Shown here: one piece after another, positions 8,520 through 20,710 of the stretch | How the letters are laid out: every line of letters starts with the position of its first letter | How positions within the stretch are numbered: position 1 is the stretch's first letter | DNA from: Salpingoeca rosetta | Lineage: Eukaryota; Protista; Choanoflagellata | NCBI GenBank assembly: GCA_033442325.1 | Contig: JAWQFM010000006.1 | Span: 1,909,997-1,959,844 of the forward strand | Direction of reading: 5' to 3' | Length of the DNA stretch: 49,848 nt | Program-made: the position numbers and the translations under genes | Notes under the pieces: model-generated | The model's input: the letters and a program-made list of their open reading frames with translations, nothing else | The model's database searches: none | What the model was told of the DNA's origin: nothing

Positions 8520-11500
8520 ATGGCTGGACGCGGCCCCACAAATGCGGCGCTGAAGGAGCTGCAGCACCCGAGCAAGTTCATCCAACTCAAGGACCAGATT
8601 GGCAAAGGCGCGTACGGAAAGGTCTTCAAGGGCGTCCTGAAGAACGTCAAGCAGCTTGTCGCCGTCAAGATCGTGCCCATCATCGAGGATGAAGAAGACG
8701 CCATCGCCCTGGAGCTTCAAGTCCTGGCGAACCAATCCTCCCACCGAAACATCGCCCGTTTCTATGCCGCCTATCTGGATGTCAACCCAAAGGACGACAT
8801 TCTCGGCGATGGCCTGCCCCAGCTCTGGCTCACCATGCAGTACTGCGCATATGGCTCTGCAACGGGGCTGGTCTCCTCCATACGCCGTCCAAAACCAAAC
8901 ATCCACGGTGGGTTGTGTGTGTGTGTGTGTGTGTGTGTGTGTGTGTGTGTGTGTGTGTGTGTGTGTGTGTGTGTGTGTGTGTGTGTGTGTATGTGTTGGG
9001 CGTGTGTAAATGTGTGTGTGTGTTGGGTGCTGGGTGTGTGTGTGTGTAGTTTGTGTGTGTGTGTGTGTGTGTTCTGGGTGTGTGTGTGTGTGCGTGTAGT
9101 TTGTGTGTGTGTGTGTTGTGTTATGTATGTGTTGTGTATGTGTGGTGTGTTGGGTGTTGAGTGTTGGAAATAGAGGCATGTTTGCTGTCCTTGTGACGCA
9201 TTTGCGTTGTGTGCCTGTTTGTCCGTGTGTCTTGTTTGGTTGTCTGCTGTTGTGTCCCTTCAGTACAGACCATGCTGTGCCGTGCTTTTCACGCTCACGT
9301 TGCTGGTATCATGAACACGAACATCACACCTCAGACCCATCCAAGACACGCAAGCCGGGCTACCTGCCCGAGCCCTGCATTGCCTTCATCGCCAAGGAGT
9401 GCCTGCGCGGCCTTGAGTATCTCCACAGCAACAAGGTCATCCACCGTGACATCAAGGGCCAGAATGTGCTCCTCACACGCGACATGAACATCAAGCTCGT
9501 TGACTTTGGCGTGTGTGCGCTGCTGCAAGAGCAAGTGGGCCGCCGCGACACCGTCATCGGCACCCCGTTCTGGATGGCTCCAGAGGTCAGCTTGCGCCTT
9601 TTGTGTGAATGTGTGTTGTGTGTGTGTGTGTGTTTGCGTTTGTGTGTGTGTGTGTGTGTGTTTGTGTTTGTGTTGTGTGTGGTCTCTTGCGTGTGCATGT
9701 GTCTGTGACTGTGACTGTTTGCTTGTTCCTTGTGTTTGCTTGCTTGCTTGTTTTCTTGCGTGGCTGCTGTGCGCATGTACCCAACACTCACACCTCCACC
9801 TCCACCAACACCAACACCTCCACCATGCCCTCCTCCTCCCCACCCCTCTCCGTTGCAGGTCATCCTGTGCGAGACGTCGCCACCGGGAACGCAATCGTAC
9901 GACTCAAAGTGCGACATCTGGTCCCTCGGCATCACCTGCATCGAAATTGCAGAAGGTACATGTGTTTTGCTTGCATGCGTGCTCTTGTTGCTGGCGTCCA
10001 CCGAGTTTGATCAGCTTGCGTGCACTGTTTCAATCTGCAATACAGCCCGCCATTTTGGTTCACCCGCACCACCACCCCTATGCACTTCATCACCAGGCCA
10101 CCCTCCGCTGCACAAGATGCCTGCCATGAAGGCGCTGATGAAGATTCCAAACCTGCGCGCGCCCACGCTCTCGTCCTCGCACAAGTGGTCGAAAACATTC
10201 CAGGACTTCGTCTACAAAGCGCTGCAGAAGAACCCAAAGAAGCGGCCACGCGCCCTGGAGCTGAGCACACACCTCTTTGTGCAGTCTGTGGATGAGGTGC
10301 AGGCGAAGGAGGAGCTGTTGAAGCTTGCGCACCAGGTGCTGCCGCCGCTACCTGATGATGACGAGCCAGAATGGTTTGGCGAGGAGGACGCAGGCGACGG
10401 CTACCACATCGACACCATGCTCTTTGACAGGTGGGCAGTGGTGCTATGATGAGTGGCATGCGTGCACGCTCTGGATGGGTTGCGTTGATGGGTTGAGGCG
10501 AGGGAAGGCTCAAGACATGCATAGATACAGAAGGGCCTTGCCATGCTTCATCTTGACATTCATGACACACACACACACACACTGACAGGTCGAAGAAGCT
10601 GCCGCTGCTGTCGAAGCAGACGGAATACGGGGACGCGGTGCGCTCAACAGACAACCTGACGGAGCTCAAGGACCTGGACACGGGCCGGCTCATCTCCATC
10701 TTGCGCAAGCGCTACAACAAAGACGTCATCTACACGCTCGTCGGCGACATTCTCGTTGCCCTCAACCCCTTTCACGACCTCGACATCTACACGGAGGCAT
10801 ACCACAACCTCTTCCTCACCACCACGCCTGTCAACCCGTTTCCGCACATCTTTGGCGTGGCTCGCCTCGCCTACAGCAACCTCAAGCACACGCACCAGAA
10901 CCAATGCTGCGTCATCAGCGGTGAGAGCGGCGCGGGCAAGACGGAGACGGCAAAGTACTTTGTCAGGCACATCCTGCACATCATCGCCCACGACAGCACC
11001 GTGAGTCATGGCTGTGCTGGCTTGAGGAGGGTGTGATGGGGCGAGCTGTTGTGTTCTGTGTGTCGAGGTTGCATGTGTGCATGCGTGCGTGGTGTGTGTG
11101 TATGTGTGTGTGCGTGTGTGTGCGTGTGCATGCGTGCGTGTATGTGTGTATGTGTGTGCGTGTGCGTGTGTGTCTGCGTGTGCGTGTGTGTGTGTGTGTG
11201 TGTGTGTCCGCGCGTACTTGACTCGTGTTGGTGTGGGTTTCATGTCTGTGCTGGATTGCAACCCGTTGCAGTTGCTGTTTGCGCTTCTAAGTGTTCGTCC
11301 TGCCCTCTCCACTTTAACACCATGATCACCACCACGACCACCCCCACCACCACCATCACTTCGGACCACAATGCAATCAGGGCGTGTCAAACCGCAGCTT
11401 GGAGAAGCGCATCCAGGGGTGCAACCCCGTGCTCGAGGCTTTCGGCAACGCAAAAACGGTGTGTGTGTGTGTGTGTGTGTGTGTGTCTGTGTGTGTGTGT

Positions 11501-20500: not shown

Positions 20501-20710
20501 GACCAGGGTGCTGATGCTGGCGCTGTTGGGCCCTACGACAACGGGTACCCGCGCGATGACTATGGATACCGCGAGGAGCAAGGGCGGGCACGGCGTCGCG
20601 GCTACGACCGGTCGCCGGGACGGTATGAGCGACACGGGCGGGAGCACCCACGTTACGGCGGTCGCTACGACTACGACGACGATGGCGACGACGATCGCGA
20701 GTGGTTCTGA
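8520..20710 (+). CDS. Class III-like unconventional myosin: STE20 kinase - motor - IQ - SAH - classical PTP - SAM - 7xSH3 - SAM (~2735 aa, 16 coding exons)
   Basis: Phase-consistent GT-AG exons: 8520-8907, 9335-9585, 9859-9955, 10097-10430, 10589-11000, 11381-11458, 11666-11788, 12012-12101, 12255-12427, 12681-12849, 13135-15986, 16262-16412, 16688-16854, 17116-17798, 18155-19949, 20266-20710. Kinase motifs [30 protein letters not shown]. Motor motifs [52 protein letters not shown] motifs [26 protein letters not shown]. Confidence 0.9.

Follow-up and report, generated by a model that had tools for sequence, protein, structure and literature searches.

The question posed by this locus is whether a protein kinase, a myosin motor, a protein tyrosine phosphatase (PTP) and a tail of SAM and SH3 domains are joined in one polypeptide of the choanoflagellate Salpingoeca rosetta, and what such a protein might do. 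The segment in question covers positions 8520-20710 on the plus strand of the window, by which we mean the whole analysed stretch of 49,848 nucleotides from contig JAWQFM010000006.1. From this segment we rebuilt one gene of 16 exons, with GT-AG borders at all introns, consistent phases, a start ATG at 8520 and a single stop codon, TGA, at 20708-20710; the 15 introns are 141-427 bases long. The spliced translation comprises 2735 amino acids and, with exon 12 ending at 16412, is letter for letter identical to XP_004998117.1 / EGD75941.1 / UniProt F2TX32 (P0154), so that the 16 phase-consistent exons proposed in a preliminary description of the sequence reproduce an annotated protein. The database name of this protein is only 'serine/threonine protein kinase'. 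The annotated gene range in GL832956.1 is 297415-311605, and the quoted span of 12,191 bases matches 8520-20710.

The domains follow each other in the order STE20-group kinase, myosin motor, IQ-like motif, a helix rich in glutamate, arginine and lysine (E/R/K helix), PTP, charged helical linker, SAM domain, seven SH3 domains, second SAM domain and low-complexity tail. At the centre of this order, the stop-free stretch 12898-15987 carries both a Myosin_head match (E = 2.6e-100) and a Y_phosphatase match (E = 1.4e-69) in Pfam. Since the motor and the PTP lie within one open exon, their fusion is independent of any splice prediction.

For the junctions between exons, the evidence comes from orthologues. 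A HMMER search with exon 11 against 1.84 billion representative proteins identified a protein of 2602 amino acids from Hartaetosiga gracilis, EP00056_P008506 (P0001), with 60% identity. It is the 'complete' open reading frame (ORF) of one assembled transcript and has the same set of Pfam domains; alignment with the gene model yielded a single high-scoring segment pair (residues 5-2671 of the model versus 2-2583, 52% identity), and the protein maps in collinear order to positions 8532-20467 of the window. A second orthologue, EP00049_P018830 (P0155) of Salpingoeca infusionum, is 2696 amino acids long, again a complete single-transcript ORF with the same Pfam set, and shows 43% identity to P0001. 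Most of the exon junctions (13 of 15) read without gaps into conserved residues of these transcript-derived orthologues, including the junction from the kinase to the motor (…TMLFDR followed by SKK…) and the one from the PTP to the tail (…FAHKALEE followed by YAKENG…); the two final junctions (after residues 1990 and 2588) are located in linkers of low conservation, where the alignments contain gaps. The complete ORFs of the orthologues, taken together with the conserved junctions, make an artefactual fusion of two genes very unlikely. By comparison with its orthologues, 8520-20710 is a single intact gene predicted to encode one polypeptide, and the domain order proposed earlier is matched from end to end by orthologous single-transcript ORFs. 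A search for contigs encoding the protein returned the genome record only and no spliced transcript contig.

The exons, and the features within them, are as follows.

Exon 1, 8520..8907, + strand: start codon and kinase N-lobe (G-loop, lysine)
Exon 2, 9335..9585, + strand: kinase catalytic loop, activation loop and APE (Pkinase, E = 1.5e-24)
Exon 3, 9859..9955, + strand: kinase C-lobe
Exon 4, 10097..10430, + strand: end of the kinase and linker with an LPPLP-acidic-EWF motif (10339-10353)
Exon 5, 10589..11000, + strand: start of the motor, P-loop GESGAGKT at 10920-10943 (Myosin_head, E = 2.2e-32)
Exon 6, 11381..11458, + strand: motor (LEAFGNAKT)
Exon 7, 11666..11788, + strand: motor, switch I at 11672-11698 (Myosin_head, E = 1.7e-11)
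Exon 8, 12012..12101, + strand: motor
Exon 9, 12255..12427, + strand: motor, variable surface insert
Exon 10, 12681..12849, + strand: motor
Exon 11, 13135..15986, + strand: 951 codons with the C-terminal half of the motor, IQ-like motif, E/R/K helix and PTP
Within exon 11, + strand: switch II DIFGFE at 13456-13473, long basic loop 2, IQ-like motif at 14683-14715
Within exon 11, + strand: E/R/K helix at 14728-14994, classical PTP domain at 15199-15981
Within the PTP, + strand: WPD at 15709-15717, HCX5R P-loop at 15808-15837
Exon 12, 16262..16412, + strand: acidic linker after the PTP, donor GTAAGC at 16412
Exon 13, 16688..16854, + strand: charged helical segment, possible coiled coil
Exon 14, 17116..17798, + strand: acidic linker and first SAM domain at 17570-17770 (SAM_2, E = 2.4e-07, 31.2 bits)
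Exon 15, 18155..19949, + strand: seven SH3 domains and second SAM domain at 19687-19896
Within exon 15, + strand: SH3 units 1-4 at 18199-18375, 18433-18594, 18601-18768 and 18793-18957
Within exon 15, + strand: SH3 units 5-7 at 18973-19140, 19162-19323 and 19327-19497
Exon 16, 20266..20710, + strand: basic segment, low-complexity C-terminus rich in R, G, D and Y, stop codon TGA at 20708-20710

A donor for exon 12 at 16460 was also considered and was rejected; it adds 16 residues, and 16412 is the donor found in the annotation and in the alignment with H. gracilis.

We inspected the enzymatic domains for the residues on which catalysis is expected to depend. The Pkinase match extends over exons 1-4, and the conservation of HRDIKxxN, DFG, the GTPxWMAPE signature and the VAIK lysine identifies the domain as a STE20-group kinase; its best solved matches are TNIK, MINK1 and MAP4K4 (E of about 1e-79), followed by SLK, STK10 and MST kinases. 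Myosin_head (PF00063) extends over exons 5-11, and the P-loop GESGxGKT, switch I NxNSSRFGK and switch II DIxGFE are all intact, as expected for a member of the myosin superfamily. The Y_phosphatase match (PF00102) covers profile positions 3-232 of 234 and includes the NRY phosphotyrosine loop, WPD, the HCX5R P-loop and the Q-loop, which makes the domain a classical PTP; the best matches in PDB are D1 domains of receptor-type enzymes (RPTP alpha/sigma/LAR, E of about 1e-88). Both WPD and the HCX5R motif are located exactly where the preliminary description had placed them. Every screened motif is present, and by this criterion the catalytic centres of the kinase, the motor and the PTP are intact here, as had been claimed, and in the full-length orthologues.

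The composition of the tail was likewise upheld. Both SAM domains scored above the SAM_2 cut-off of 20.5 bits, with 31.2 bits for the first and 35.7 bits for the second. Units 1, 2, 5, 6 and 7 of the SH3 array each matched Pfam SH3_1 (E from 9e-12 to 2e-05), and units 3 and 4 yielded no Pfam match individually. In alignments, these two units correspond column by column to canonical SH3 domains in the orthologues, and an AlphaFold model of both (predicted local distance difference test score, pLDDT, of 82.7) matched tandem-SH3 structures in Foldseek with E = 2e-06; the solved tandem SH3 domains of SORBS1, STAC3 and p47phox were aligned over 118-136 columns, across both units. The alignment to the orthologues combined with the match to the tandem fold supports the count of seven, with five SH3 domains recognised by Pfam and two cryptic ones. 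The E/R/K segment, which had also been noted before, consists of 89 residues, 85% of which are E, R or K, with only 3 leucines and 4 alanines, and is a candidate for a single alpha-helix; in the orthologues this region is kept in kind and varies in length.

To place the gene in a wider context, we collected proteins with both Myosin_head and Y_phosphatase domains. Such proteins are present in the transcriptomes of H. gracilis, S. infusionum, S. rosetta (at least two loci) and Salpingoeca urceolata, as well as in those of Diaphanoeca grandis (two), Helgoeca nana, Savillea parva (two), Acanthoecidae sp. 10tr (two) and Bicosta minor, and also on environmental contigs. In all, at least ten choanoflagellate species, from both orders, have the core of kinase, motor and PTP. 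A second S. rosetta locus, G000:C28:207449-210059 (+), where a motor match adjoins a PTP match, is probably a paralogue such as XP_004990266.1.

A tree of the motor domains was inferred in a quick IQ-TREE analysis of 40 rows and 701 columns, with support estimated by the Shimodaira-Hasegawa-like approximate likelihood ratio test (SH-aLRT). The 17 kinase-motor-PTP proteins formed one clade (SH-aLRT 99), which contained choanoflagellate sequences only and was nested in a clade of 27 rows (support 100) together with animal Myo3, Myo16, MH2 and chitin-synthase myosins. The affinity to myosin III that had been suggested is in agreement with this position in a fully supported clade with animal Myo3 and Myo16. 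The SAM-SH3-SAM tail is common to the three craspedid orthologues, S. rosetta, H. gracilis and S. infusionum, whose motors share a clade of 11 rows (support 95) with acanthoecid proteins that bear SH3 domains and are devoid of SAM domains. A search for stand-alone relatives of the SAM-SH3x7-SAM tail recovered only fragments of orthologues (Microstomoeca roanoka EP00043_P007323 and two environmental pieces), and a search of the ESM Atlas with the tail gave only weak leads (0.81) to SH3 and SAM proteins of the SASH/SAMSN type, which is under the threshold for a meaningful match.

Two proteins of this survey have other additions. EP00051_P009658 (P0008) of S. urceolata combines kinase, motor and PTP with a C-terminal MH2 domain and so provides a connection between the clade with PTP domains and the MH2 myosins already in the literature. 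In the amoebozoan Soliformovum irregulare, EP01119_P020581 (P0090) is a protein of 2025 amino acids with Pkinase, Myosin_head, RhoGEF and Y_phosphatase domains; its motor has a long branch and does not group with the choanoflagellate clade. This protein is a contaminant or else a kinase-myosin-PTP fusion that arose convergently.

Comparisons with these relatives show which parts of the architecture are shared. The orthologues in H. gracilis and S. infusionum have the same order from the kinase to the second SAM domain, with all seven SH3 domains at the same positions, but the lengths of the E/R/K helix and the linkers differ and the R/G/D/Y-rich C-terminus is found only in S. rosetta. The paralogue XP_004990266.1, named 'STE/STE20 protein kinase' (P0163), and the proteins of D. 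grandis, H. nana, S. parva and S. urceolata share the kinase-motor-PTP core, whereas their tails are absent or consist of IQ repeats or MH2 rather than SAM-SH3x7-SAM. The D1 domains of PTPRA, PTPRS, PTPRE and LAR and the kinases TNIK, MINK1 and MAP4K4 have the same catalytic motifs as the S. rosetta domains, but are membrane receptors or CNH-domain kinases, none of which is fused to a motor. Animal MYO3A/MYO3B and NINAC resemble the S. rosetta protein in having an N-terminal STE20-group kinase fused to a motor, in their IQ-type neck motifs and in belonging to the same motor clade.

Animal MYO3 is a tip-seeking motor of actin protrusions that is regulated by its own kinase, and E/R/K helices in other myosins extend the lever arm for stepping. 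By analogy, the S. rosetta motor would move to the barbed ends of actin bundles in collar microvilli or filopodia, or would reside there. The kinase may tune the motor via autophosphorylation, with the long basic and serine-rich loop 2 as a plausible target, and the E/R/K helix would lengthen the lever arm. The tail, replacing the espin-binding tail of MYO3, would deliver the PTP along with an SH3/SAM scaffold that might recruit proline-rich partners or oligomerise, and local phosphotyrosine signals would be erased where the motor accumulates. As an overall explanation, we consider a single intact kinase-motor-PTP-SAM/SH3 gene with a motor-borne signalling role to be probable. The full scenario of MYO3-like transport, in which kinase and PTP are carried by the motor on actin bundles, is put forward more tentatively and may well prove incorrect.

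Several observations weigh against the MYO3-like scenario. In the motor tree, Myo3, Myo16, the MH2 myosins and the choanoflagellate clade formed a polytomy, and a sister relation to class III was not recovered. By sequence similarity the kinase is at least as near to TNIK/MAP4K4 (268 bits versus TNIK) as to animal myosin III kinases (223-245 bits); of the 'STE20/myosin-III-type kinase' described earlier, the assignment to the STE20 group is supported, and the similarity scores do not establish the myosin III type. Since neither the tree nor the kinase singles out class III, the MYO3 mechanism can be transferred by analogy only. Matches to animal class III proteins are confined to the kinase and the motor (47-50% of the query), and these proteins have no PF00102, SH3 or SAM domain, which agrees with the earlier statement that animal myosin III is without such a tail and indicates that the logic of the tail differs. 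The class III tail (IQ neck, MYO3 tail homology) is in turn absent from the S. rosetta protein, the tail of which is PTP-SAM-SH3x7-SAM. The IQ motif that had been listed among the domains fits the consensus, yet its score of 14.8 bits is below the Pfam cut-off of 20.3, and it is therefore referred to here as IQ-like. Finally, SH3 signatures are no longer recognisable in the sequences of units 3 and 4, which may be unable to bind PxxP ligands.

Other explanations concern the gene model and the activity of the enzymes. An ORF from M. roanoka, EP00043_P007323 (P0266), which is 802 amino acids long, labelled 'complete' and 69% identical, contains only the SH3 array and a SAM domain, as would be expected if the annotated model fused a kinase-myosin-PTP gene with a separate SAM-SH3-SAM gene, or if the locus mainly gave shorter products. 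However, this ORF begins at nucleotide 3620 (3.6 kb) of a longer transcript, which is better accounted for by a frameshifted assembly of the full gene; such an assembly of the orthologue is its likely origin, although it may represent an internal isoform. Moreover, the whole architecture is contained in single complete ORFs in H. gracilis and S. infusionum, the introns that separate the PTP from the tail measure 261-356 bases and are flanked by conserved coding sequence, and the acanthoecid orthologues also have SH3 domains behind the PTP. We therefore regard a false fusion, or a predominance of shorter products, as very improbable. We give marginally less credence still to the idea that the enzymatic domains include one or more pseudo-enzymes retained solely for binding. 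A regular expression screen for the VAIK lysine, HRD, DFG, APE, P-loop, switch I/II, NRY, WPD, HCX5R and Q-loop in the wider set of kinase-motor-PTP proteins found single motifs missing in some members, for example in S. urceolata (kinase) and in D. grandis P0003 (switch II), but all of them were present in S. rosetta, H. gracilis, S. infusionum, Acanthoecidae sp. 10tr and D. grandis P0157.

The same protein could also act as a slow or static scaffold anchored to actin, for example at the cortex, the phagocytic cup or the collar base, tethering the kinase, the PTP and SH3/SAM partners under load. Strong attachment to actin would be favoured by the long and very basic loop 2 and by the SAM domains, with their potential for oligomerisation; a tail without similarity to the MYO3 tail that underlies the transport of cargo to tips, and a clade not recovered as the sister of class III, are also in line with such a role. 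On the other hand, the motor retains all nucleotide-switch motifs and is followed by the extended E/R/K segment, a putative lever arm for stepping, and we judge a static scaffold to be unlikely, albeit considerably less so than a faulty gene model or inactive enzymes. Within the preferred interpretation of a motor-borne signalling protein, the linker between the kinase and the motor offers a further lead. It contains LPPLP, an acidic run and EWF (10339-10353), and the pattern LPxLP…EWF is kept in H. gracilis and S. infusionum and not in the acanthoecids. From its sequence, the LPxLP-acidic-EWF motif is a possible internal SH3 ligand, which we mention as a lead only. In a self-regulating module of this kind, the tail would fold back onto the motif and switch off the motor, the kinase or the PTP; once released, the PTP would be concentrated at the tips of microvilli, setting collar length or the signalling in prey capture. 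This elaboration is speculative and on balance improbable, but if true it would represent a pre-animal solution for spatially confined erasure of phosphotyrosine.

The window is eukaryotic in character, with a G+C content of about 56% and introns rich in GT/CA microsatellites. Within the gene (8908-20265), tracts of (GT)n or (CA)n with 5-38 units occur in 11 of the 15 introns, and these are mostly polarised, with (GT)n near the 5' end and (CA)n near the 3' end. Intron 7, with a late (GT)12, and intron 14, with an early (CA)18, deviate from this polarity, and two donors, at 11459 and 19950, sit within a (GT)n run. Both of the nearest gene calls are on the − strand; the one upstream ends about 580 bases before the start codon, and the one downstream lies about 410 bases past the stop codon. 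The upstream neighbour (about 7520-7940, − strand) resembles a radical-SAM/UPF0004/TRAM methylthiotransferase gene, and the downstream neighbour (from about 21120 onward, − strand) encodes 334 amino acids with no Pfam match. Assembly gaps, visible as runs of N at 1721-1820, 6621-6720 and 47079-47560, are all outside the gene.

The gene is a rediscovery, since it is already present in RefSeq and UniProt and its family has been published as a 'myosin III-like' expansion. In the accessible text of these surveys, orphan myosins of Monosiga brevicollis with SAM and Y-phosphatase domains are described (Odronitz & Kollmar 2007, PMC2375034), as are 18 myosin III-like genes in S. rosetta and 15 in M. 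brevicollis, some of them with protein kinase, Y-phosphatase and SAM_2 domains, of which Y_phosphatase and SAM_2 are listed as choanoflagellate-specific myosin partners (Sebé-Pedrós et al. 2014, PMC3942036). Three choanoflagellate orphans with an N-terminal kinase were not assigned to class 3 in the text available from a later classification (Kollmar & Mühlhausen 2017, PMC5583752). The S. rosetta gene is a member of this expansion, and our motor tree reproduces the grouping. The exact full architecture, the seven SH3 domains and the conservation of the catalytic motifs are not spelled out in the portions of the survey texts accessible to us, which report no function either, and the accessible part of the Sebé-Pedrós 2014 supplements gave no match to the peptides or domain strings of the protein. 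Our literature search found no paper that names F2TX32, EGD75941 or XP_004998117 and no functional study of this protein, and two papers on choanoflagellate microvilli contained nothing on myosin III-like proteins. The expectation that the architecture might already appear in myosin surveys without functional work proved accurate.

To these surveys the present analysis adds the exact structure of the gene, the conservation of all three catalytic centres, judged by their motifs, in both choanoflagellate orders, the origin of the kinase-motor-PTP core in a single event and two cryptic SH3 domains. A robust transfection method is available for S. rosetta (PMC6333174), so that the function of the protein is open to experiment. 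A myosin that combines a PTP and a Ser/Thr kinase with an SH3/SAM scaffold is a candidate for placing the erasure of phosphotyrosine at actin structures, such as the feeding collar.

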